A stretch of DNA of 46,932 bases from Octopus bimaculoides (taxonomy: Eukaryota), in contig NC_068984.1 in the NCBI RefSeq assembly GCF_001194135.2, positions 91,106,204 to 91,153,135 of the forward strand, given 5' to 3'. A program made the translations under genes and the position numbers. Positions 2,921 through 43,134 of this stretch are shown in pieces. The notes below the pieces were generated by a model. The model saw only the letters and a list, made by a program, of their open reading frames with translations. It was not told the DNA's origin and did not search any database. Within the stretch, counting starts at the first letter, position 1, and each line of letters starts with the position of its first letter.

Positions 2921-5900
2921 CTACACACATAGACACATATATGTATAAACACATATGTGCATATATATATACATAAAAGATAAACAAGAGTGAAAAAACT
3001 ACAGAAGGCTTGTGTTACATTGTTAAAGTATATTTTTAAATCGTTATGTCAGAAAAATGTTATAAAATTTTGAGTATATAAACATTGTATTTGGAGAAAT
3101 AACCGGTTTCGTGTTTTCTTTACAAATTTCTTTACCTGTATCGTAACATGTCTTTGCTCCAGTGTATAAAAGCGAGTTCTAGATAGGAGAAGGTAATCAG
3201 GGATTTTTTCCGGTATAAGGGAGATAATCGAAATGTTGGAGCTGATAGATTTTGATTAATTTAACATGATTTGGTTTAGAAGGAATAGAATGTTAGGTTT
3301 TGTTCTATATTTTTTTCTCTCAGTAAGGTGAATTTCCTTATTTAAAAGTGTTAGCAATGGTTAAGTTTTGGCTTATATTTTTCAATGAAGAAGGTTTCCT
3401 TATTTAATCTAATTTGTGTTGGTGTTCCAATGGCACAGTGATAGAATGGAAAGATTATAAATTGTGGTAGCATTTGTTTTGCGCATTTCTCAATATGTTC
3501 ACTAAAGGGTATCATTCTGTATTCTGGGAATGCAATCTGCTGTTGNNNNNNNNNNNNNNNNNNNNNNNNNNNNNNNNNNNNNNNNNNNNNNNNNNNNNNN
3601 NNNNNNNNNNNNNNNNNNNNNNNNNNNNNNNNNNNNNNNNNNNNNNNNNNNNNNNNNNNNNNNNNNNNNNNNNNNNNNNNNNNNNNNNNNNNNNNNNNNN
3701 NNNNNNNNNNNNNNNNNNNNNNNNNNNNNNNNNNNNNNNNNNNNNNNNNNNNNNATAAGGTTTTCTGAGGCACAAGTCAGATTTGATTTTGAATTTTTGT
3801 CCCTCTTTGAAAAGGAATTCTGATCCTTCTAGAAGGTTTGGGCATGTTGCGCAATTTGGTTGACCATTTCGAGCGTGGCCGTTGCCAGTACCTCCTAACT
3901 GGCCTTCATGCCAGTGGCACGTAAAAGCACCCACTACACTCTCTGAGTGGTTGGCGTTAGGAAGGGCATCCAGCTGTAGAAACTCTGCCAAATCAGATTG
4001 GAGCCTGGTGTAGCCATCTGGTTCACCAGTTCTCAGTCAAATCGTCCAACCCATGCTAGCATGGAAAGCGGACGCTAGCATGGAAAGCGGACGCTAGCAT
4101 GGAAAGCGGACGTTAAACGATGATGATGATGACATGTGCATATATGGGTACAGGATGTCACCAACAGTAAACAACATGAAATACGAAAACAAATGAGTTC
4201 AATATGCAAACAACGAGAGAAAATAAAACGGTATGTTCTTGGATGGAATGTTTGATCAGAGATCTCTTCACTCAGAGCTTACCTGTGGTTACACAACAAC
4301 AATGCATCAAATCTATTAAAAGGAAGGAAATTGCTTACTTCTGCTATGAAATTTAAAATACATTCATAATAGCCAGGACACAGCCAGGTTTCATTGTGGG
4401 TTCCATTGTCAAACAGAGCCATCCTCTTCAAAGGTGAATTCACAGTAGACTGTATAATATTAAATAATGATATTTCATTAACTCAAGAATAATCAGTAAC
4501 TGAAAGATTTTTAAACAATTTATCATCATCTTTATGGAAGACAACAACAGTCACTGTTGTGTGGGGCTAAGATCTTAAAGACACAAGTTTGTAATCTGGT
4601 TTAATTCCTGCCTGGAACTGATTTCACTTAATTACTACTATTGGGGAAAGTGTAAGCGCCAAAAGAAACTATATGCCCCAATGGAATAAAGTTTCTGGTG
4701 GAGGTTGTGTGTTTGCACACACCCTCCCTTTTTTTCATTTCTTCGGGTTCTATGTCTTCAATATTGGAGATTAAAATTTTGCTAAAACAACATGATTTCA
4801 AAATTTTTATTTCCTTCTCTCCACCCATTCTTGCTTTCCAAAGGCACAAAACTCCCAAAGGTAGTTTTCTATGCTGAATTGCATCAGGGCAGGACGAACC
4901 ATGGTGGCCAGAGGGCATGATATAGGGATGTGCTAAAGAGACATATGAAGAACCCTGGCATCTCCCTAGGCACCTGGGAGGAGAAGGCCCTGCAGCACAA
5001 TGAATGACACTGATTGCTGAAGCACACAATTCCAGCCATTGAGGAGAATAGTAGAGATAATATGAAAGAGATGATTTCTGTAGAGAACAGTCAATGTTGA
5101 TCTACAACAGACAGCCAATGGTGACAATGTCACAGTGTTTATATGAAATTATGGGATGTCTCTGGTTAGTATTGCAAAAAATTTCATTTTCTAAGGAACA
5201 ATTTACTTTTACTATTTTACAATGGTAAACTGTATGTTAACCATGTGTGTGTGTGGGGGGGGGAATCTGTGTAAATTTTATGTAGAATTGTGCTGGGATG
5301 GAATATGGATAATGACTAAACTTGGAGTACTTTGTTGGGTTTAATCTAATGAATGAAAAACAAGACCAAATTTCTAGGTACATTTCTGTCGGTAATTATG
5401 TGTTTTTTCTCAGATGTACACACACACAGAGGTTTGTTGTGGCTCAACATGGTTCAATACAATTGTGACAACGTAAAATTTTAGTACAAATTATTTGCTA
5501 GTTCTATATAAACACAACATGAAAATAATTTGTGGCTTGGCATTAAATTGAAATAGTTGAGATTTAGGAAGAGAAAAGAAAAAATCATCAGAAAGCTCCA
5601 TTTGGAAGTGGATTAAAAGATCCTGATCTTAGATAAAATATTGGGTCATCCCATAAATAATGCGGTTTTTTATACTTCTTTTTATTTTTCAAAATTAGAT
5701 AAAGTTCATTTTTAATCTAAAATATACTCTCCTTCATTTTCTACAATGCCCTTCTATCTATCTGGTAGACTTGCAAGGACCCTCTTTCAAAATTCGTTAG
5801 TCTGTGATGAAATATTCTCTTCCACTATTGTTCTGACTTTGTCTACAGAATTCGAAGACTACAGAATAAATGATAATCAGATGGGGCAATGTCTGGTGAA

Positions 5901-7994
5901 TATGGTGGGTGGGGCATTGTTTTCCATTCAAACTGCTCCACCCTTTGAAATGTTATTCTCGCTGTATGTAGCTGAGCATTATCTTGAAACCAAAGATGGT
6001 CATTTTTCTTCTAGTGCTGACTTGAATGACCAAATCCAATTGGATTTAGTTGAATGATCAAATCCAAGCTTCTCTGCTAGTTCCTCAACAGTTATGATGG
6101 GATTTTATTCCACCAGGGTTTGCAGGACATCCTCGTTGAGCTCTACAGATCTTCCAGGACAAGGCTCATCTTCTAGGCTGTAGATCTGGCTCAGAGTTTC
6201 TGGAATCACAGTTGAGACTGGCTTATGCTTTATTGTCTGATCCCTATATACTGCATTAAGATTCCTCGCACTTTGCGTTGTGTTGTTGCCTTTATTGAAC
6301 TCATAAAGCAAAATATGCCAAATATGCTCCTTTGTCACTTCCATTATAGCTTTGAAAAAATAACTGTTAAAATCGAATTGCACTCTTGAAAACTTGCACT
6401 AAAAATAAGGACAAGGTAAAATTACTACCTGCTTATAAAGCAAGTTGATGCTGGTAGTTCATCCTATCCCCCTCTGACTTTTAGTTCATGCAACTGAAAA
6501 AAACTGCATTACTTATGGGATGACACAATAAATAAATAGAATCTCTCAAAATTTGAGGCTTTTACTAAAATTAAAATTAATTTTTTTTCAGAAATTGTAC
6601 AAAATAAATAAAGCCCCTCAAAGTTTGAAGATTATAGTGGGCTATTATATCGTTTATCTTTCATAAATCCTACAACAGAATTATAAAATGAAAATGATGC
6701 AAGGAAAAAATATTTTCCAGAGATTTAGCTGTTATTTCCAGCATATGAAGTTTTCTGATGAGGACTTGATATTTTTTTGTCTGTTGTTTCATGCAGAAAT
6801 CTATGCATGAGCAAATGAATATATCCAATACGTAAAATGTTTGGAGTTTTCTGCCTTTGGAAAACGGGAAGGGTTGGGGAGGGATGACATAGGATGTTTT
6901 GTAAGAAAATTTGAAATTTAAAAAAACAAATTTTTCCAGATTTGTAATCTCCATATTTTTCTATGTGTATTTAAAAAAGCAATTCAAAAGTGGTGAAAAA
7001 TGAAATAACAAATGGGGTGAGGAAGGAGGAAATGAAAATTCTGAAAACATGCCTTTTTGGCAAAATCATAATCTCTGATACTGAAAACAGAAATCTGAAG
7101 AGATTTTTGAAATAAAAAATGAAAATGGGGGTGGGGTCAGGGTGAAAACACCTGACCTCCAACAAATTCCCATTATAAGACAAAAAGAATGAAGTCAATA
7201 AATTAAAGAATTAGTAGAGTAGTGTTAGCTGAAAATTTAATAAGCCGAGTGCTAAGCAGATGTACATGACACATGATGACAAGGAGAGATTAAACTCTTT
7301 GAAATATTTTATCTTAATAAAAATTAATAAAATTCATAATCAGAAAATTTTTCTCTCAGAACTCATCTAGAAAATTTAGGCATTGCAACTTCCCATCTCC
7401 TAATAAATCTTGAATTTCTTGCCTATATAAAAAATGGCTGCATGGTAAGAAGTTTGCTTCCCAATTACATGGCTCTGGGTTCAGTCTTGTGAGTAGATTT
7501 GGTAGACGGAAACTGAAAGAAGCCCACTGTGTGTGTGTGTGTGTGTGTCTTTGTGCCTATGTTTGTCCTCCAACACCTCTTGGCAACTGGTGTTGGTTTG
7601 TTTATCTCAGCAAAAGAAGCTGATAGAATAAATACCAGGCTTAAAAAAAAAAACTGGGGTTGATTCACTCAACTAAAACTCTTCAAGGCTGTAGTCTAAT
7701 GACTGAAACAAGTAAAAGATTATTTTATCCTACCAAGTCTGTAATGCTAATGAATACTCTTTACTCTCTCTCTCTTTTACTCTTTTAATTGCTTCAGTCA
7801 TTTGACTGCGGCCATGCTGGAGCACCGCCTTTAGTCGAGCAAATCGACCCTAGGACTTATTCTTTGGAAGCCTAGTACTTATTCTATCGATCTCTTTTGC
7901 CAAACCGTTAAGTTACGGGGACGTAAACACACCAGCATCGGTTGTCAAGCGATGTTGGGGGGACAAACATAGACACACAAGCACCCACACACAC

Positions 7995-17000: not shown

Positions 17001-18951
17001 TGAAAATTTATAAGAAGCTGATTAATGGCATTACCTGGCTTCACAATTACCAGCAAACTGAAAACAACAAAACCTATGTAGTACATATGTAGTTCAATAA
17101 TAATTTTGGATCAACTCAACCTAGCTATAAATTCCATATATTAACAATATTTCTATTGTCTTTACAATTACCTTCAAAGGTCAATGAAATCATTTGAAAT
17201 TAGTTGTTACAAAAGTAATAATTTAACAGTAATATTAGTGTATTAATATCAGTATATTTCTGTCAAAGCTGAACTGAATTCTATTGAGAAATAAGATTCA
17301 AATGATCAATCAGTAACCATTTTGTTTAATTATAATTGTTAATTAAACAATTACACATGAAAGGTCCTATTTTCAATTATATGATTAATAATAGATAACC
17401 AAAACATGAGATTAATTCTACTTGACAAAATTCATATAAAAACAGTAGTACAAGGACAGACTGTAAATTTCATAGGTTGGCTATGAAGGAGTGATGCTAT
17501 AGCTGTGAAATCTTGTATGCATTAATTTCAACTCCCCTTATTAAGAACTGCATCTTTTCAGGTAAACTGACATCTGAATGTTCAAAGAAAACTTCAAAAG
17601 TAACTAATACTGACTTCTCTTAAAAATCAACAAAATTTGGTATTGCAATGTTATCAAGTACCTGCAGTAAAAGAGTTTAGCCTCTAAGGACATTCATGCT
17701 GACATGGTTGCTACATCAGGGGATGACACTCCAGCTCTATCAACAGTGCAAAAGTGGGAACAGAGAGTCTTGAAGACAACCCAAGGTCTGGACATCCTGC
17801 AACTACCATGACTGAAGAAAACATTGATCATGTTCACCACATGGAGGTGGATGAGATGATTGACTATAAATCAAATAGCCAATGCTATTAGCATATTCCT
17901 TGAGAAAGTTGAGAATATTCTGCACAATGAACTTGACATGACAAAGTTTTCTGTTCGGTGGGTGCCATGTCTTCCGACACCTGATTAAAAGTACACCAGG
18001 CTGATTATATCACAGGAAAATTTGATATTGTTTGAGGCAGATCCAGCTGGTTTCCTTAAATATTTCCTAACCCAGAGTGGATGTTGGCTTCATCATCTTG
18101 AGCTACAGACAAAGAAACAATCCATGCAGTGGAAACAGCCCTCCACACTTGCTCCAAAGAAGGCTAAGGTCATTTCATCTGCAAGGAAGGTCATGACCTC
18201 AACTTTTTGAGATGCAAAAGGCAACGTGTTCAGTGACTATCTTCAGAAGGGCCACACCATTAATGGAGAGTAGTATGCCAACTTGCTGCTGAGGCAGTTA
18301 CAAAAAGCTATCAAGACTAAACACCCAGGAAAACTGACGAAAGGGGGTTTGTTTCATCAGAACAATGCTCCAGCATACAAGTCTTTCTGAGTACATTTAG
18401 TAAATGGAAACTGAAAGAAGACTATCATATATGTGTATGTGTGTCTGTGTTTGTTTTTCCACTGCCACTTGACAACTGGTGTTGATGTGTTTACGTCCCT
18501 GTAACTTGACAGTTCAGCAAAGGAGACTGATAGAGTAGGTACCAGGCTTAAACTATAAGTACTAGAAAATTCTTCAAGGCAGTGCCCCAGAATGGCTGCA
18601 GTCTAATGACTGAAACAAGTAAAAAATGGAAAAAATGTAATCCTTAATCCATGTGAAGCCAGAAAGCCACAACAGGTTAAAAAAAAAATGTATCTAGTAA
18701 TTTATGTATGTATACATGCATGCATATCTTTATCTTTTATTTTTTGCTTGTTTCAGTCATCGGAATGCGGCCATGCTGGGGCACAGCTTTGAAGGGTTTA
18801 GTCAAACATATCAACTTCTGCAGTAATTTTTTTAAAGTCTGGTACTTATTCTATTGTTCTCTTCTGCCAAACCTCTAAATTACAGGGACATAAACAAACC
18901 AACACCTGTTGTAATGTGGTAGGAGGATAAACACACACAAAGCTATGTATG

Positions 18952-28369: not shown

Positions 28370-29090
28370 AGGGATAGCATTTACACCCATCAAAAGCATT
28401 TTCCCCAAAATGACCCCACATTCTCTATATGTAAACAGATTTATTGTCAAGAAGGCTAAACTCAGGGATGTAATGGATTATTGACAACATATTGGCATTT
28501 ATTTTAGTCTTCTTGTCCTTATCATCCCTTACAACTGGTAATATCAGAGAAGTTCACTTAGAAATTTACAGGCTAATAAATATCTCCTTGTGCTAATCTG
28601 TCAAGCTCAATTCCTTCTTTCAGGACGATATCCTTTAATATACCTTTACTAAATATCTCACAAAACTTGTTTGTTAGAGCAGTCAATTTTTGTTACATGA
28701 CTACATCTGCATTGCTCATATGCAAAATGCTGAATAGTTTCTCCCACTTCAGTTAGAGATATTGTAGCTGATTTTAATCCAGCAGTGTCAATCCTTCTCC
28801 AGGGATGATCATAAGCACTAAGTCCTTTTCCTGGCTTTTATATCTAATGGCTACCTCAACAGTTCTGAGTGAAGTGACAGTTTCACTAGTATAAGTGCAA
28901 AGATTGGTGGTATTTGACTGGATTTGTAATGCTCTGATGGGCCATTGCTGTTAGTTGAGGGATAATTTTACTAATTACTGTCAGAGATGCTCCAATATCA
29001 ACTTCAATCGTCATAGTAAATCTATTAACACAGACATTAGTTATCATAGGATCAATATGGTGCTCCCCTACTTTATACATGAAGGACTAG
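28370..29090 (-). mobile_element. Decayed Gypsy-type protease and RT-start remnant
   Basis: ORF 28886..29080 has TIEVDIGASLTVIS (aspartic protease D-[TS]-G-like). Downstream ELDRL..G...PV resembles the start of Gypsy RT. Confidence 0.55.
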
Positions 29091-30210: not shown

Positions 30211-30985
30211 TATTTTAATTATTTTTATAATTTGTATATATTTATTTTATTATAAATGCAAATCAACACCATGGAGGAATTGACACAAGCTTAAATGATA
30301 AACCACGATATGGCAAGAGATTGCTGTATCATCATTTAATAGAGATTACTATGATAGGTACATAGAACCTAAAATAAGAGTTAAACTAAGCTTCTCAGGT
30401 CTTGGTGATGTAAATGAGTTTATTCCTTAAATCAGTGAAGAGCTAGCATAACAGTTTGTCAATAAGAGTTCAAAAGAAAAATAATTAGAAAAATTATTTC
30501 AGGTAAAGTCCTCCAACAGGTAATTTCTGGATGACAGCTACATGAATTAGCAATAAACTTTGGTATGTGAAACAGTTTTATTAAAAACATTATTTAAAAG
30601 ATATCCTGTGATACTCAGAACAATGATATTCTTAATCAAAACATTTAAACATAATAAGCATCTTGCTTCAGTATAATACATTCAAAGAGATTAAATTCAT
30701 GAACAATTTCTATAAAAACAAAGTACAATTCAACAGAGATATAATAAAAAATATAATTTTGAAAAACAAAATATATGAAAATTCTCTTTAATCATTCAAC
30801 AGTTTTCTTACATTGACTAAGTTCTTTAGTACACTAAAACAAAAGTATTTGATAGTGCAGTCAATAGACTGTTAATATTCATTGGTCACCAATTTTCACT
30901 TTAAAGCTCAACATAGAATGTTGGGATACAATCTGTCTATGACGAAGATTGGGTTCTTGGTTAAGCCAATTTTAATTAATTTTTG

Positions 30986-31120
30986 TGTTATGCAAATAAC
31001 GTTGATATAAAGAGCATGCACATTTGACAAGAAGAGAAAGAGAGAGAATGGCCATTCGGAATAACGTACAGGACTATGACTAAAAATTAGTTTCTTTGAA
31101 CCAGAATTTACTGGATGACA
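30986..31120 (+). repeat. 5' LTR (135 bp)
   Basis: Direct repeat of 34622-34761, about 90% identical by manual alignment. TATAAA near 31005. Confidence 0.92.
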
Positions 31121-31201
31121 ATCAAAGAAACTAATTTCTGAAAATACACAATTGGGAAAAGTTGCAGAGCAGTCTATACAGAAAGAAATTTGTGAAAAGA
31201 C

Positions 31202-34200
31202 ATGAATGATATGGAAAGATACTTGAAACCTGACAGATTGAATGTAGACCCAAATTCTACAAATGCTGATAAAACTTTTAATCACTGGTATAGAACTTTA
31301 AACAACTTTATAGATTCACTACCAGGGCAGGAAGGTAGGATTAACTATGTGGAATCGAACGTACACAAATTCATCAGTGAAGCTAAGAACTATGAACAAG
31401 CTGTGAATACACTAAAGAGTGTGTAGATTAAACCAAAGAACATCGTAATGGCACGCCATCTTTTAGCCACAAGAAAACAGAAACCAGGTGAATCTCTAGA
31501 CCAGTTCTTAAACGAATTCAAAATATTAGTGAAAGACTGTGACTTTGTTGCAGTGAGTGCTGAACAGTACCAGTCTGAAATGATTTGAGATGCATTTATA
31601 AATGGGCTCACTTCGAATCAAATATGATAAAGACTATTAGAAAACAAAAGCTTCGACCTCAGTACAGCTTATGATCAAGCAAGTTCACTAGATGTGGTGC
31701 AACAGAGTTCCAGTGTCTTTCTAAACTCTGAGGGTGCTAACTTCAGTCCAACTTCACCCATTGTAGCTAAGCCAATAGATTCTCAAAAGCAGGAAGGAAA
31801 ATACTCTGCCGTGACCCAAAAAGGAGACCCCTTGCAATGTTAGTTTTGTGGCTATTCCAAACACCCACGGACTCACTGCCCTGCGCAGAAAGCAGTCTGT
31901 CACAAATACCAAAAAATAAGGCATTTTGGAAAACTATGTAGGGGCAACGCAGCAACTGTAACACAGGAGGATGGTAAATATGATTTGCCATTGGCAGTAT
32001 CAGCATCAGCAGGTTCACTCTTCCGAGTAACCTCCATGGTTATACTGAACAATAGCTATAAAGCCGAAGCATTAATTGATAGTGGTAGCACTGACAAGAG
32101 CTTCATCAGTGAGAAGCTAGTGAACACACTCAACATTAAGACGGTCAAATTGAAGAACGTCATTGGTATGGCTTTTGCATCTCTTTCTGCGGAATCCAAG
32201 GGATATTGCACTGTTTCACTAACCCTGAATAATCAGAAATACAACCATGTGAAACTGTACGTGCTCAGAAACTTGTGCACTGACTTAATTCTGGGTACTG
32301 ACTTCCAAGAACGGCATGAAATTATTACCAAACAATACGGAGGACAGAGACCACCATTAACATTTACTATGAAAACTGATCCTTCAAAGCTATTCGCTCA
32401 TCTCAGAGAGGACTGTAAACCTATCACAGCCAAATCGTGAAAATACTTGGAATGTGATCAAGAGTTCATCAGGACAGAAGTACACTGCTTAGCAGATGTG
32501 ATTATTGAACCTAGTAACTTCCCTTGGAGATTGCAGGAGTTAGTTGTTCAAGAAAAAAAAAAGTCGAAGAATGGTGATTGACTACTCAGAGACGATTAAC
32601 AAATATACACAGCTTGATGCCTACCCACTTCCTAAAATTGATGAGTTAGTGAACACTATTGCCAAGTATAAAGTCTATAATACTATAGACTTACATTCAG
32701 CATACCATCAGATTCCTCTATCAGAGAAAGACCATCAATTCACTGCCTTTGAAGCTGATGATAAATTATGGCATTATACTAGGATGTCATTTGGAGTAAC
32801 TAATAGCAGCGCATGTTTCCAATGTATAATGGACGACTTCATGAGTAAATACAAGCTGCAAGATACGTTCCCATTCATAGACAATTTAATCATATGTAGG
32901 AAAGATCAAAATGACCATGATAAAAATTTAGAAAAATTTGAAGTGGCAGCAAAAAGTGAAGGGCTTACCATGAATGAAGACAAATGCGTTTACTCAACAA
33001 CAACTCTTGACTTTCTTGGATACCGTATCTCACACAATACCCTCAGCCCTGACCCAGAAAGGCTTGCTCCACTCCTCAATCTTCCTACACCATCTAACCA
33101 GAAATCATTAAAATATATAGACAAAATATATCCTCTAAATAACATATTAAAATTTCCTCTAAACAGCCAACAAGTAAAAGCGTTTGAGTCATTAAAGGTA
33201 GAACTAGCCAATGCTGCCATTCAAGTAATAGAGGAGAACATTCCGTTTACTGTTGAGACAGATGTTTCAGATTTTGCCATATCTGCGACACTAAATCAAG
33301 ATGGAAGACCAGCCGCATTCCATTCTCGCACACTGTAAGGTAGTGAATAGTACCACTCCTCAGTTGAAAAGGAAGAAAAGCAATTATCAAATCAATTCAT
33401 CATTGGAGACACTTTCTTTTAGGTAGACATTTTACATTAATTACTGATCAACGTTCTGTTGCATTCATGTATAATTATAAAGTGACGAGCAAAATTAAAA
33501 ATGCTCCAGATGCATTCACAAAGGTATGCTGTTCAGCAATTAGTTCACATTCACTTTGTGAGTTACATGCAGCACTGTGCCATCTTGGTGTAGTACGCCT
33601 TCATCATTTCGTCCACAGTAGAAATCTTCCATATTCGTTAGAGAATGTGAAACAAATATATAGGAATTGCTCTATATGTCAAGAAGTGAAACCACAATAT
33701 TATAAACCAAACTCAGTTAACTTAATTAAGGCCACACAGCCCTTCAAGTGAATTTCCATCGATTTCAGAGGTCTGATTCCTTCCACGAAGCATCCTTATC
33801 TCCTAACAATGGTTGACGAATATTCTCGGTTTCTGTTTGGTTATCCAGTATCTGACACATCAGCTCAGACTGTAATAAAGTGTATTACAGACTTGTTCTC
33901 AGTTTTTGGTATGCCCAGTTATGTACATTCAGATCATGGAACTGCCTTTATGTCTACAAGATTGAGAGAATGGCTCCTCAGTAAGGGCATTGCAATGAGA
34001 AGGACGACACCATAAATCCCACTGGGAACAGTCAAGTAGAAAGATATAAAGGTATTATTTGGAAGTCAGTACTACTCTCTTTGAAAACCCATGCCCTTCT
34101 AGTATCTTCATGGGAAACAGTTCTTTCAGATGCATTGCATTCAATCAGATCTCTACTTTGTACATCCACTAATGCCACTCCTCATGAACGTCTTTTTAAC

Positions 34201-34584
34201 TATCAAAGACGTTCAGCAACAGGAACATCTATGCCAACATGGCTTCTTAACCCAGGACCTGCGCTTGTTCAAAGGAACAATTGTACTAACAAGTATGACC
34301 CTATCGAGGACCAAGTTAATTTAATCGAAGCCAACCCCCAATACACTCACGTCCGTTACCCAGATGATCACGAAACCACAGTATCTACAAAACAATTGGC
34401 ATCACCAGGGAAGATTAACCCAACTGATAACCTAACCCAAACATTTGTCCCTCAAGAGCCAGACAGAGAGCCAACTGAAATTTCTCCTCCTTCTAGAGAT
34501 AACTGTCAAGAACAAAAAGAAGAATCCCCTCAGCTGCGTCGATCACAAAGGATTTGGAAAGCCCCGGAAAGGTTTGATTTATGA
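31202..34584 (+). pseudogene. gag-pol pseudogene (in-frame gag-protease; several stops and frameshifts)
   Basis: MERYLKPDRLNVDP gag; C*FCGYSKHPRTHC knuckle; ALIDSGS protease; RMVIDY, IDLHSAYHQI, FGVTNS and FIDNL RT; ETDVSDFAI RNase H; H..LCH...C..C, VDEYSRF and HSDHG integrase; ends RRSQRIWKAPERFDL. Confidence 0.93.
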
Positions 34585-34621
34585 TTTTTTGTTTTTCCTT
34601 CTTTTTCTAGGAGGGAGTGAA

Positions 34622-34761
34622 TGTTATGCAAATAACGTTGATATAAAGAGCATGCGCATTTGGCAGGAAGAGGAAGAGAGAGAACGGCCATTCGGAATAA
34701 CATTCAGGACTATGGCTAAAAATTAGTTTCTTTGACCAAGATTTACTGGTTATACATGACA
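34622..34761 (+). repeat. 3' LTR (140 bp)
   Basis: Preceded by the PPT and followed by TSD TTTTG. Confidence 0.92.
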
Positions 34762-34839
34762 TTTTGTAAATGAAATTTTCAGCCATAGTTTTGAAAAAGA
34801 CAAGCTCTGACAGACTGACTTAGCTTTAAAGCCTTCAGT

Positions 34840-36531: not shown

Positions 36532-38497
36532 ATGTCTGAACCAACTGCTAAAAAGGCAAAACTGAGGAACTACAAAGAAGATTTTATCATGTTTGGTTTT
36601 GTATCTGTAGACTCAAAACCTATGTGTCTTGAATGTGAAACTATCATGACAAATCATTCCATGAAGAAAGTTAAGCTGGAACAGCACCAGAAATTAAGGC
36701 AAAGGTAGACTAAAAAGAAAATACAGCGAATCAAACTACCTGACTTTGTAAAGAAGATAAATACTGAAAAAGCAAAGATACTCAAACCAAGTTATTTGGT
36801 CTCTGAAAATTATTGCCAAGGTTGCAGCATCTCAGATTTATGGCGAGAAACTTGTCAAGCCTGCTATGATAGCTTGTGCAAATGAAGTTCTGGGAAAAGA
36901 TGCTGCATCTACTCTCAAATAACACAATTACAAGAAGACAGGATGAAATGTCTAATTTTGTTGAGGAGAAGATTGTGGAAACTCTCTAAAAGACAAATTT
37001 TTCTATCCAGGTTGATGATAGCACAATTCATAACCAAGCTATCCTTCTGGTCTATGTCAGATTCATCCATGAAGATGATATAAGGAAAGAAATGTTATTC
37101 ATAAAAGTTTATCTGAAACAACTAATGGAGAAGATATATTCAATGAAGTAATGCAGTATTTTAATGATAAAAATATTCCATTGACTAATTTGATCAACAT
37201 TGCATCAGATGGAGCTGCAGCCATGACTGGAAAAGTGAAAGGCTTTGTTTCTAGAATGAAATCAGTTGCTCATCACATTTTTTATATACATTGCATTATC
37301 CACAGACAGCATTTGGTTGCTAAGAATATTGGAGGACACATGGAAGAAGTACTCAACACTGCCATACATGCAATCAACTTTATCCAATCAAACTCAGTGA
37401 ATAATAGATATTTTATGCAATCCTGTGAAAATGAAGATTTTAAAACCCTATTGCTTCACACAGAAGATGGTTGTCAAAAGGCCTGAGCCTTGAAAGACTA
37501 GTGAATTTGTGGGAACCATTAATCAACTTTCTCATGTTCAAGAAGCAAGCTGATACAGCTAAGAAAATTTTAGTAAGACTTTCTGAGTTTAAATCAAAAA
37601 TATTCTACTTGAGTGATATTTTTAAAACAGTGAATCTGCTTAACGTAGAGCTGCAAGGTAGAAAATCAGTTTTGGTCACCTGTTCTCAGAAGATAAAAGG
37701 GTATATGGGGAAATTAAAATTTTTGGAAAAAAACAGTTTGAAAAAAAAATTTGGCATCATTTCAAAATTTTAACACTACTGTTCCTACATCAGAATGCAT
37801 TGCTGTGTGCATTGTCCATCTTGAAGATCTTCATGTAGACTTTGAGAGAAGATACAATGATTTATTAAAGATGGATTATCCACTCTGGTTTGTAGACCTA
37901 GAAAATTATGAGCCAGGAGATGAAAATTTTGAGTTGACTGAAATGTTGTTGGATTTGAAAGAGAATATGAATCTGAGAAGAAGAGTTGAAAAAGAAAGTG
38001 TCTTTGCCTACATATCGATAAAGGAATCACACCCAAATATGTTTCGACATGCAGAAGCAAGCACCATTTCTTTCCCACAACATGGATGGTGGAATCTGCA
38101 TTTTCAGCTGTTGTAGATATTTTAAGTAGAAAAAGAAATAAATTAGATGTCAACAGCAGAGGAACTATCAGACTAAATGAGTTCATTAAAATTGATTATG
38201 ATATCTTCTGTCAGAAACACTAATATCAAGCTAGTCACTAGCTGAATGAACTAAAAATGAATGACTTTAAGAAAAATGATTTTGATATCTTGTGTTTATC
38301 TTTGTTTACTAAAATAAATTTTAAATTTTATCTTTTGATTGCTAAAATAAATTTTAAAGTGTAAATAGACTATTTTGTCTTTTCATTAAGTATTTTAGTG
38401 TGAAAATAGAATAGCATAAAGTAAAAGTAGAAGTGGTCCCTAGAAATTTTTTCAAGTAAAAAATGGTCCCTGGACTGAAAAAGGTTGGGAGTCACTG
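36532..38497 (+). mobile_element. hAT (Buster/Charlie-type) transposon fossil with 3' TIR; 5' end not found
   Basis: BED-like YKEDFIMFGF...PMCLEC...SMKKVKLEQH; FSIQVDDS; ASDGAAAMTG; HCIIHRQHL; LLLHTE; C-terminal ESAFSAV and QASH*. Terminus AAAAAGGTTGGGAGTCACTG is followed by ATCTAAAT (nnnTAnnn site). Confidence 0.87.
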
Positions 38498-39474: not shown

Positions 39475-42433
39475 AAAAAATAATAAGGTACTCAGATATC
39501 TGGATGGTTGTACATTTACAGATTTTTATTAATATGTCACGTGTTTTATGAATAATAGCGCTTGCACCTATTCTTGTAGGTTCTTCAAAATATGATTTCA
39601 TTTCAGAGAATATCTCTTCTAATAGTATTATTGAATGTGTAGGGACAGAGAGAGATATATAGGATAGTAAAGGAGGGTGAGGAATGGAGGAAAAGGTGAG
39701 AGAGTGTGTGTGTGTGAGTGTTTTTATGTGTGTGAGTGTTTTTGTGTTGGTGTGTGTGTGTATGTGTGTGTGTGTGTGCGCACGTGTGTGTGTGTGTGCC
39801 TGTGTATCTGAAAGGAGTGTCAATGGAAAAGAGAAGGAAAGAAAGAAGGAAGAAAGGAAGAAGGAATTGTGTTTACATCTATACAACTGGTTAGTTAAAA
39901 AAAGGTAGGAGACAATTATGAAAACCAAGTTAATTGGGTTCAATTCTAGTTGGCACAAAAATGTCCCACTATATATGGGTTTCTTGCTGTTCTTAGGTTC
40001 TGTTGTTCCAAAGTTGAATAATGATCAAGAATAATGAAATATTGTGATGAATCAATGAGTGAGGTATCTAAATATTGGTAAGTTCATTTTGTCATAGGCA
40101 TGAATCAAAAATAAATATAAAATATAGCATTTCTGTAGTCATTTACCAATATAAATTGGCAAATGGTACCATTGTTTTAGATACTGAAATAACAAGTTCT
40201 AAAATAGTTTTGGATTCACTTTTAGGATCAAATCCGTTATGGAAAAAATACAAATAAATATAATTACAAAGATAGAGAAAGTATATGTAAAGGTATGAAA
40301 ATACAAAGATAGTGAAGTATGTGAAAGGATGAAAATTGTTGGTGAAATATAAAAAAAATTACAGTTTACTTCACAAATTTGGTTCTTCATCCAATACAAA
40401 TCATTACAGAAATAGTGATATTTCACCAGTCACAGCTATACACACACACACACATATACAAATACATACATATATATATACATATATATAAATACATACA
40501 TACTCACACACGCACATATACACATACATACATACACACACATATATATATATGCATACACACACATATATATATTTTTTTTCAAGAGGAATAAAGATAA
40601 GGAACAATTCTTTACAAAAATGAAGATATTAGGATGGGCAATAATGTACAAGGGAAAATGTCTTGTGGAGGAGCTCAATGAAACAGATATGCATACAATT
40701 TCTTGTACATTGTGAGGACATTATTTTACAGACTAAGTCAATAGTTCTAGATAGGTTGTGATTTTCATGTTTTCAGCCATTCAGTTTGGGTGAGAATTTT
40801 GTTATGAAGTATTTCTCCATATTTTTCCTGAAGGAGGTGTCGTTCCTTGGGCGTTTATAGAAGGGAAAGATCTTAAATTTTCCTTCTCCACATGCTTCTA
40901 AGTGTTTACTCAGTANNNNNNNNNNNNNNNNNNNNNNNNNNNNNNNNNNNNNNNNNNNNNNNNNNNNNNNNNNNNNNNNNNNNNNNNNNNNNNNNNNNNN
41001 NNNNNNNNNNNNNNNNNNNNNNNNNNNNNNNNNNNNNNNNNNNNNNNNNNNNNNNNNNNNNNNNNNNNNNNNNNNNNNNNNNNNNNNNNNNNNNNNNNNN
41101 NNNNNNNNNNNNNNNNNNNNNNNNNNNNNNNNNNNNNNNNNNNNNNNNNNNNNNNNNNNNNNNNNNNNNNNNNNNNNNNNNNNNNNNNNNNNNNNNNNNN
41201 NNNNNNNNNNNNNNNNNNNNNNNNNNNNNNNNNNNNNNNNNNNNNNNNNNNNNNNNNNNNNNNNNNNNNNNNNNNNNNNNNNNNNNNNNNNNGGGGTTAC
41301 TGCAGGTTCCACATCTACCATCTCCACACTCTTTTACGAAGAATTCGGTTTTATTCTCTGATGAGAATTTTGCTCTTGTCAGTTGTTTTTTCAGGTTTTT
41401 CTCTTGGCGTTTACTGTTTTTTATGCAATAATTGTTTAATAGGTTTCCCATTTTGGGGCTTTATAGGACTATTGGTAAGTTTGAATGTATAATTTGAAAC
41501 ATGTTGGTAACTCCAGGGTTGTGTGTGTTTATGAAAGGGATGATGTTTGCTTTGTTTTTCTTTTTTGGAGTTCTGAGTTGTGTGATGTCCAGTTTCATTG
41601 TTCTTGAGATTGCGTCTTTTATTAAGGTGAGTGGGTATTTTTGTTCTAGTTGGAAGTTTTTAAGTTCATCTAGTCTTATTTGGCATGTCTGTGAGTCGGT
41701 CACTAAGCTGCATATGCGTCTTGCCATACTATATGGAATATTTCTTTTTATGTGGGATGGGTGGCAGGAGTAGAAATTTAAATATTGGTGTGTGTCGGTT
41801 TTTTTGTAGTAGATGTCTGTTGTGACAATGGAGTTGTGTATCTTGATGTTGATATCTAGTAAGGGAAGTTTGTTGTAGTTGGTATCTATTGTGAAGTGGA
41901 TAGATGGGTGAAGTGTGTTGAGGACATTGTGGAATGTTCATAGATCGTCTGATCTGTTCCAAAAGATGAAACAGTCATTGAGGTAGCATTTCCACTTTTT
42001 TCTTGATGTCTTCTTTGAAGTTGTGTTCGAAGATGTTACCTATTTCATTGTATAGTTTGTTCTCAGGGAAACCTATCACTAGGTTGGCATATGAAGGTGC
42101 AAATTTCGTACCCATAGCCATGCCCTTTACTGTCGGTATGACTTGTTGTTAAATGAGAATGTGTTCTCTTCAGATATACAGGCACACACACACACACGCA
42201 CACGCACGCGCACACACACACACACACACACACACCAACACAAAACACTCACACACACACACTCTCTCACTTTTTCCTCCATTCCTCACCCTCCTTTACT
42301 ATCCTATATATCTCTCTCTGTCCCTACACATTCAATAATACTATTAGAAGAGATATTCTCTGAAGTGAAATCATATTTTGAAGAACCTACAAGAATAGGT
42401 GCAAGCGCTAATATTTATAAAACATGTGACATA
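39420..42433 (-). mobile_element. 5'-truncated Penelope-like retroelement with inverted terminal duplication
   Basis: RT (ENTFSFNNKSYRQ, AMGTKFAPSYANL, LLDI, IPYSMARRI), linker CGDGRCGTC, and GIY-YIG C-terminus FKIFPFY...EKYFITKFSPKLN (42165 to 40773). 39533-39812 is repeated inverted at 42169-42433. Confidence 0.82.
40916..41292. other. Assembly gap (N run)
   Basis: Run of N. Confidence 1.
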
Positions 42434-43134
42434 NNNNNNNNNNNNNNNNNNNNNNNNNNNNNNNNNNNNNNNNNNNNNNNNNNNNNNNNNNNNNNNNNNN
42501 NNNNNNNNNNNNNNNNNNNNNNNNNNNNNNNNNNNNNNNNNNNNNNNNNNNNNNNNNNNNNNNNNNNNNNNNNNNNNNNNNNNNNNNNNNNNNNNNNNNN
42601 NNNNNNNNNNNNNNNNNNNNNNNNNNNNNNNNNNNNNNNNNNNNNNNNNNNNNNNNNNNNNNNNNNNNNNNNNNNNNNNNNNNNNNNNNNNNNNNNNNNN
42701 NNNNNNNNNNNNNNNNNNNNNNNNNNNNNNNNNNNNNNNNNNNNNNNNNNNNNNNNNNNNNNNNNNNNNNNNNNNNNNNNNNNNNNNNNNNNNNNNNNNN
42801 NNNNNNNNNNNNNNNNNNNNNNNNNNNNNNNNNNNNNNNNNNNNNNNNNNNNNNNNNNNNNNNNNNNNNNNNNNNNNNNNNNNNNNNNNNNNNNNNNNNN
42901 NNNNNNNNNNNNNNNNNNNNNNNNNNNNNNNNNNNNNNNNNNNNNNNNNNNNNNNNNNNNNNNNNNNNNNNNNNNNNNNNNNNNNNNNNNNNNNNNNNNN
43001 NNNNNNNNNNNNNNNNNNNNNNNNNNNNNNNNNNNNNNNNNNNNNNNNNNNNNNNNNNNNNNNNNNNNNNNNNNNNNNNNNNNNNNNNNNNNNNNNNNNN
43101 NNNNNNNNNNNNNNNNNNNNNNNNNNNNNNNNNN
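42434..43134. other. Assembly gap (N run)
   Basis: Run of N. Confidence 1.

Follow-up and report, generated by a model that had tools for sequence, protein, structure and literature searches.

In a 46,932-nt stretch of the Octopus bimaculoides genome (contig NC_068984.1, positions 91,106,204 to 91,153,135 of the forward strand; hereafter the window), a decayed Ty3/Gypsy (Metaviridae) LTR retrotransposon located at 30986-34761 carries a perfect inverted repeat at the edge of its 5' long terminal repeat (LTR). According to sequence comparison, this repeat is probably the primer/primer-binding-site pair of the element, which would place Tf1-like self-priming in a clade widespread among animals. 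The complementarity, its position at the LTR edge, its covariation over families and phyla and the absence of a chromodomain were observed directly. The pairing of arm and site on one RNA, cleavage by RNase H and extension of the resulting primer would complete the process. To our knowledge, self-priming of reverse transcription has been demonstrated for Tf1 only; elsewhere it has been deduced for Tf1/sushi chromoviruses and a few plant lineages.

The LTR arm, a putative self-primer (AAATTAGTTTCTTTGA, 31084..31099, + strand), is the exact 16-nt reverse complement of the putative primer-binding site (TCAAAGAAACTAATTT, 31122..31137, + strand), with an intervening loop of 22 nt. This complementarity had been reported in a preliminary description of the window and was confirmed by direct reading; the arm was also found unchanged in the 3' LTR (34720..34735, + strand, exact match), as described there. 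The site starts 1 nt beyond the terminal CA of the 5' LTR, outside the LTR, and the spacer between them is a single A (31121..31121, + strand, direct reading). No TGG-type tRNA site was found by direct reading after the 5' LTR of the window, in agreement with the earlier statement.

The 5' LTR (30986..31120, + strand, 135 nt, TGTT...GACA) is a direct repeat of the 3' LTR (34622..34761, + strand, 140 nt, TGTT...GACA) and aligns with the LTRs of Octopus vulgaris copies. The ends of both LTRs are fixed by a 5-bp target-site duplication, TTTTG, present on the left (30981..30985) and right (34762..34766) flanks by direct reading (no strand assigned), which agrees with the end of the 5' LTR at 31120 given in the preliminary description. 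The 3' LTR is followed by this duplication and unrelated flanking sequence, and the complement of the arm is absent there. The two LTRs were 91-93% identical (91% for the direct repeat 30986-31108 versus 34622-34744), correcting the earlier estimate of about 10% difference.

The inverted repeat at the LTR edge is genuine and beyond chance. Perfect 16-nt inverted repeats with a loop of up to 60 nt occurred in 0 of 200 first-order Markov simulations of the window, which has a base composition of 64% A+T, and perfect 14-nt repeats with the same loop limit occurred in 4 of 200. Two perfect 16-nt repeats are present in the real window, the LTR-edge pair and an unrelated pair within 2610-2675. The latter (2610-2625 / 2660-2675, CATGTAATTTATGCAT / ATGCATAAATTACATG) has a 34-nt loop, and no others of that length were found. 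None of 3440 other internal positions of the element showed more than 9 nt of complementarity to the LTR.

Folding of the RNA of 31070-31150 gave a minimum energy of -19.4 kcal/mol (z = -5.3 versus shuffles), with one long stem and a small CCAG/CTGG stem in the loop. The small stem-loop noted in the preliminary description lies beside the arm (CCAG ... CTGG, 31101..31114, + strand) and is part of the minimum-energy fold; it was not significant against shuffled loops and is suggestive only. The 22-nt loop noted earlier holds for the window and not for the octopus family, in which 28 nt is typical. The window 5' LTR has lost 6 nt in the loop compared with its own 3' LTR and three O. vulgaris copies.

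The nearest proteins to the window element were O. vulgaris predictions, and four O. vulgaris loci shared 77-90% DNA identity with it. In three of them (L001, L004 and L003), the 5' junction reads ...ACTGGTnATACAT(G/T/A)ACA, then the spacer A, then TCAAAGAAACTAATTTCT; these junctions vary solely at the third-from-last LTR base, and the 3' LTRs stop at the same CA. The arm had 0 changes across six octopus LTRs, compared with about 4% off-majority bases in the remaining columns of the same six LTRs, and the site was identical in 4 of 4 octopus 5' junctions. For arm and site together, 1 of 175 cells differed in the octopus copies against a background of 5.6% (P = 5e-4).

Related families and covariation of the duplex

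Relatives of the element were recovered in three ways. In marine metagenome contigs, a search with the reverse transcriptase (RT) picked up relatives sharing 60-64% identity; scanning of metagenome contigs returned 80 loci at 40-51% identity; and self-comparison identified LTR pairs about 3.8-4.0 kb apart in 27 loci. No relatives were found in a viral contig collection scanned with the RT alignment. An LTR-complementary site was present in about 28 related families. The named hosts are O. vulgaris, Mytilus edulis (L088), Actinostola sp. (L089) and Trichuris suis (L090), and the remainder are metagenome contigs. Ten further families came from short contigs and one from a Logan contig (L091), a collapsed genomic-type assembly in which neither transcript end is visible. 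Members of the clade measure about 4 kb, encode a gag-pol of some 1200 aa between LTRs of 100-300 bp, have a target duplication of 5 bp and lack a chromodomain.

The trait was present in 10 of the 12 RT clusters sampled. Of the 27 LTR-paired elements, 25 showed a perfect complement of their own LTR in the 11-19 nt after it; the two loci without a match were assembly artefacts. At about 3500 other internal positions per element, no complementarity equalled the length of the site, and the null maximum was 8-13 nt. The distance from the arm to the LTR end varied over a threefold range among families (21-79 nt), and the spacer was one base in nearly all relatives, mostly A (G in L068; two bases in L053 and in Mytilus L088).

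Target duplications of 5 bp fix the LTR ends in at least 10 relatives (L014-L017, L023, L025, L030, L033, L046 and L068), and in each of them the complement starts 1 nt past the terminal CA. The possibility raised in the preliminary description that the LTR extends past the complement is excluded by these duplications together with that of the window. No TGG-type site was found by direct reading after the LTRs of the relatives (about 28 families). In many of them (L014, L017, L025, L028 and others), gag starts 0-15 nt past the site, and in L014 it overlaps the site. Where gag starts at this distance, nearly all of the 5' leader is the site.

The preliminary description had proposed compensatory covariation as a check of the pairing, and about 28 families were found to carry arms and sites that differ between families yet remain exactly complementary. 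Examples are L005 (arm TAGCTCTTTAGA, post-LTR complement TCTAAAGAGCTA), L014 (TTCTAAGCTGTTAAAA and TTTTAACAGCTTAGAA) and L017 (ATTTCTAGTCGAATAAA and TTTATTCGACTAGAAAT). Between the arms of L025 (CAAGTTTATTAAA) and L028 (CAAGTTGATTAAA) there is a single change, and the post-LTR sequence carries the compensating one.

For a quantitative estimate, 18 sequences were aligned in a fixed register comprising the 17-nt arm, the 6 nt after it, the 7 nt before the site and the 17-nt site. Paired cells made up 93.5% of this alignment versus 61% in shuffles, and 0 of 500 shuffles attained the observed value. Pairs changed on both sides were 17 of 17, compared with a shuffle mean of 12.2, and the covariation score was 0.81 versus 0.20 in the control. 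Sliding the partner by 1-3 columns left 34-50% of cells paired. The inner 12 pairs were 100% Watson-Crick with zero G-U, in a set detected by searching for perfect runs and thus slightly biased to stems of Watson-Crick pairs only.

The duplex was retained in young copies, the class in which the earlier account had considered that it might be lost. Copies with LTRs 99-100% identical and intact frames keep a perfect duplex; among them is L014, in which the LTRs are 100% identical, gag-pol forms one reading frame of 1213 aa and the duplex is 19 nt long. Mismatches were confined to decayed copies (L003, L013, L026, L033, L057 and the 5' LTR of L090).

Two loci, L006 and L007, are the nearest non-octopus relatives after L005 and were set aside. 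In L006 the complementarity is limited to 7 nt and part of the 5' LTR has been replaced; in L007 no 5' LTR could be recognised. About 20 more distant or degraded loci had neither the hairpin nor a definable LTR and are uninformative on other site types.

Several relatives showed further repeats. The Actinostola sp. element L089, with 100% identical LTRs, is embedded in a tandem array (period about 53 nt) that extends to either side of it (1-2801 and 6767-7404). Internal direct duplications in pol were found in L088 from M. edulis (4684-5347 / 6090-6752, 666 nt) and in L090 from T. suis (4609-6156 / 6317-7866, 1.55 kb), both at 98% identity. L050 carries a 28-nt perfect inverted repeat (CCAGGGGGGCACAAATGCCCATTTTGTC, 414-441 / 457-484) upstream of the RT, unlike the usual hairpin of the clade.

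Self-priming and alternative roles of the hairpin

Under self-priming, the LTR-derived arm of the genomic RNA would fold onto the complementary 11-19 nt that start 1 nt past the LTR end. The arm, which in most families ends with AAUAAA or AUUAAA followed by GCC or ACC, would be released by the RNase H of the element, which would cut the RNA strand on the loop side, at the duplex edge, by analogy with Tf1. The one feature that points to such release is the conserved duplex edge, between ...AAA and GCC or ACC. The new 3'-OH would then be extended through the spacer, U5 and distal R to give minus-strand strong-stop DNA. Later, the plus strand would copy the primer, so that the site would be rewritten from the arm and the Watson-Crick match maintained. 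In tRNA-primed elements, every cycle regenerates the site from the primer and so keeps it exactly complementary, a rule applied here by analogy. The comparative data are in favour of the Tf1-like self-priming suggested in the preliminary description, with the priming step itself still inferred from sequence.

The arm coincides with a candidate polyadenylation signal in many families. In 17 of 28 families its terminal hexamer is AATAAA or ATTAAA, with GCC or ACC next to it, and one-off variants of the hexamer (GTTAAA, GATAAA, TTAAAA) occur in six more. A GT-rich stretch is often found later in the loop, e.g. in Trichuris L090 and in L091. Because the arm ends at AATAAA or ATTAAA in most families, it probably lies in the distal end of R rather than in U5, where the preliminary description had placed it. 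The octopus element (CTTTGA), L005, L045, L053 and L054 have an arm without a poly(A)-like hexamer and a duplex that is still perfect. In many families the arm is followed by a stem of the type RCCN...NGGY (GCCT...AGGT, ACCAG...CTGGT, GCCTAT...GTAGGC), a recurrence that was not significant against shuffled loops, and the minimum-energy folds of relatives consist of one long stem and small local hairpins.

The overlap with the hexamer suggests that the 5' copy of the poly(A) signal could be masked by the hairpin. The strongest alternative is that the hairpin is a regulatory or structural RNA, serving for 5' poly(A) signal masking, packaging or dimerisation, and that some other primer is used. 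We consider this unlikely. It is favoured by the hexamer or its variants at the arm end, by the GT-rich stretch that often follows, by the presence of the partner sequence only at the RNA 5' end, and by the lack of a TATA-like motif at about -30 or anything else that would place the arm at that end. However, judging from the octopus family and the four others that keep a perfect duplex without the hexamer, masking is not the sole role of the hairpin. A stem maintained for structure only should tolerate G-U pairs, and none were present in the inner 12 pairs. Furthermore, the duplex is anchored on the site side, usually 1 nt from the LTR edge, with a variable distance to the arm. Such anchoring fits a primer site, as minus-strand synthesis defines the U5 edge, whereas a structural hairpin would have no reason to start 1 nt past the LTR end across families. 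The lack of any other visible primer site, together with a gag that starts 0-15 nt downstream in many relatives, also points to priming. Masking and priming are compatible, and occlusion of the signal may be an added function rather than a replacement.

Self-priming of the Tf1 type has to be weighed against several observations that speak against it. The overlap of the arm with the hexamer in 17 of 28 families leaves room for a different or additional role of the hairpin. One long hairpin and a small adjacent stem are present here, and not the three-duplex pretzel of Tf1; the 14 nt after the site were no more complementary to the loop than control windows, giving no sign of a Tf1-like third duplex. 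The position of the arm at the RNA 5' end is putative: none of the families had a TATA-like motif some 30 nt upstream of the arm, so no transcription start could be estimated from it. In the window, TATAAAG is located at 31006-31012, 78 nt upstream of the arm. An RNA start well upstream of the arm would leave the primer with a 5' tail and complicate plus-strand transfer, a problem avoided in Tf1. No tRNA genes were found in the window or in the 35 loci, so there was no host tRNA to compare with the sites. The detection bias towards perfect runs mentioned above belongs to the same side of the balance.

A second alternative is that the post-LTR site binds a host RNA primer (a tRNA, tRNA half, mitochondrial tRNA or small RNA) and that its match to the LTR is secondary. 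Internal and half-tRNA priming is known in Ty1/copia lineages (PMC6317226), and the sites were compared with their own LTRs and not with host tRNA sets. Against it, the site differs in sequence among about 28 families while matching the element's own LTR exactly in each, so that the host RNA would need to covary with the LTR of every family. No site begins with TGG, and the sites are AT-rich, unlike cytoplasmic tRNAs. An Rfam search of 30900-31300 found no known RNA family, with sub-threshold chance matches only at the site. Host priming is therefore highly improbable. Finally, a chance repeat or an LTR-internal hairpin produced by a misplaced LTR boundary, for which the A+T-rich composition and the second 16-nt repeat of the window might be cited, is refuted by the absence of 16-nt repeats in the simulations, by the target duplication that ends the LTR at 31120 with no complement after the 3' LTR, and by the recurrence of the feature with covariation in many families.

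Comparison with known elements

The closest parallel to the proposed self-priming is found in Tf1/Tf2 of Schizosaccharomyces pombe and the Tf1/sushi group, which likewise are Ty3/Gypsy elements without a tRNA-type site (PMC7175516, PMC5341516, PMC4600332, bioRxiv 10.1101/2022.12.06.519325). In Tf1, the mRNA's initial 11 bases anneal to the primer-binding site and cleavage by RNase H falls between bases 11 and 12 (PMC7175516). The Tf1 self-primer is located in R (PMC5341516), and a three-duplex pretzel is required (bioRxiv 10.1101/2022.12.06.519325). As in Tf1/sushi elements, the site described here adjoins the terminal CA of the 5' LTR, and its complement is an LTR-derived segment (R, here probably) within the RNA of the same element. 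In contrast to Tf1, the duplex is 11-19 nt (16 in the window) rather than 11 nt, and in most families the arm stops at a poly(A)-like hexamer with GCC or ACC directly after it. Unlike Tf1/sushi chromoviruses, these elements have no chromodomain at the integrase C-terminus; in further contrast to Tf1, their hosts belong to several animal phyla and all are only about 4 kb long.

Self-priming has also been predicted in plant Tcn1 chromoviruses and in the TAR lineage of Ty1/copia (Houba, Osr-1), from sequence, on the basis of a missing tRNA site and complementarity between the LTR and the post-LTR region, as in our case (PMC6317226). These lineages are distinguished by their plant hosts, by the assignment of TAR to copia and by the chromodomain of Tcn1, a distinction drawn from published descriptions. 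The fungal GalEa elements (Ty1/copia) resemble the present ones in having a hairpin, the Conserved Hairpin Site, in the primer-site position and no tRNA site (PMC5445492). However, the GalEa hairpin is located entirely downstream of the LTR; its arms measure 9 nt and include a conserved mismatch, the first arm is palindromic, and no complement was found in the LTR (PMC5445492), whereas here one arm is in the LTR. In retroviruses, U5-IR and U5-leader stems also pair LTR sequence with sequence around the primer site and aid initiation, as cited in PMC5445492 and PMC3601003; those stems flank a tRNA-binding site, whereas here the paired sequence occupies the primer-site position.

In overall organization, the elements resemble the Mag lineage (SURL / C-clade, including bivalve Steamer-like elements), which is compact, occurs in marine invertebrates and has a single reading frame and short LTRs. 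LTR length is also similar to that listed in PMC3601003, and the termini (TGTNGTG..., ...AYANAACA-like) are close to the motifs given there for Mag A and Mag C, an indirect lead to a possible affinity. Among the Gypsy clades of molluscs, the C-clade has the highest abundance (PMC6238403). In contrast, a Steamer-like element of Mytilus chilensis is reported to have a tRNA-Asn site, a length of 4.76 kb and a 4134-nt reading frame (PMC11046912).

In the literature searched, which left out most subscription journals and Repbase notes, no chromodomain-less animal Gypsy clade with an LTR-complementary site was described, and a large survey of mollusc LTR elements did not discuss primer-binding sites. 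The preliminary description had stressed self-priming outside the chromoviruses; this as such is not new, given the plant TAR prediction (PMC6317226). The new point is the chromodomain-less animal Gypsy clade. A broader interpretation can be offered tentatively, as possible rather than probable. It would comprise a previously undescribed compact, chromodomain-less Gypsy clade across phyla (molluscs, cnidarians, nematodes and others) in which self-priming arose separately from Tf1/sushi, the 3' end of the R-region primer is the poly(A) hexamer, and one hairpin both primes and masks the 5' signal.

If self-priming is correct, independence from tRNA primers would be common in animal genomes, following the same logic as Tf1 with a simpler structure. 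The many families would offer naturally covarying sequences on which the rule of rewriting the site from the primer in every cycle could be studied, and the hexamer overlap would link priming with control of polyadenylation in the 5' LTR, a connection that is testable. Annotation pipelines that demand a tRNA-type site would list these elements as being without one. Such elements would also evade host controls directed against tRNA primer-binding sites; LTR elements that depend on tRNA are thereby targets of 3' tRNA fragments (PMC7472051).

Structure of the window copy and neighbouring features

The coding region of the window element, a broken gag-pol (31202..34584, + strand), was characterised by Pfam matches and comparison with the intact L014. 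Domain bounds on the + strand were 31211-32017 for gag, 32018-32386 for protease, 32387-33116 for RT, 33117-33532 for RNase H and 33533-34584 for integrase. In the reading-frame fragments of the window, Pfam domains occur in the order aspartic protease, RVT_1, RT_RNaseH, Integrase_H2C2 and rve, and intact relatives have the same order of protease, RT, RNase H and integrase. The best match among solved structures was the Ty3 Gag-Pol polyprotein (E = 2e-63). At its C-terminal end, the integrase frame reads ...RRSQRIWKAPERFDL. No chromodomain was detected by Pfam in the 167-aa integrase C-terminal reading frame of the window at E <= 0.1 or, at E <= 0.01, in L014, L017 and L011, whose polyproteins are intact, which extends the earlier observation for the window to intact relatives. 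A polypurine tract region (AGGAGGGAGTGAA, tract AGGAGGGAG, 34609..34621, + strand, direct reading) abuts the 3' LTR; relatives show the same arrangement, ...GGGGTGAA directly followed by TG.

The window copy is old and dead, as follows from its LTR divergence of about 8%, stops and frameshifts. Relative to L014, it has 10 in-frame stops (five in gag, one in RT, two in RNase H and two in integrase), at least three frameshifts (one each in RT, RNase H and integrase) and four deletions of at least 5 aa (two in gag, one in RT and one in RNase H).

Two minor sequence similarities were noted around the element. An imperfect inverted repeat (19/22) between the 3' LTR (34703-34724) and the flank 12 nt beyond it (34774-34795) was rejected as a real feature, being probably due to chance (BLAST E = 0.3). 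A 22-nt segment located 450 nt upstream of the element (30515-30536) matches the final 22 nt of the LTR (AACAGGTAATTTCTGGATGACA) at 77% identity and may reflect chance or a relic.

Elsewhere in the window, a 64-aa reading frame with a DIGAS motif (28886-29080, - strand) resembles a retroelement aspartic protease and may be a remnant of another retroelement; it was negative in Pfam. Short reading frames of 58-121 aa at 36532-38116 (+ strand), which gave no significant Pfam match, resemble remnants of a hAT-type transposase. Runs of N, corresponding to assembly gaps, are present at 3546-3754, 40916-41292 and 42434-43134. Two direct repeat copies (7487-7945 and 18385-18912) are 75-79% identical, contain ...TTTCAGTCATTTGACTGCGGCCATGCTGGAGCACCGCCTT... 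and have the appearance of SINE-like interspersed repeats.

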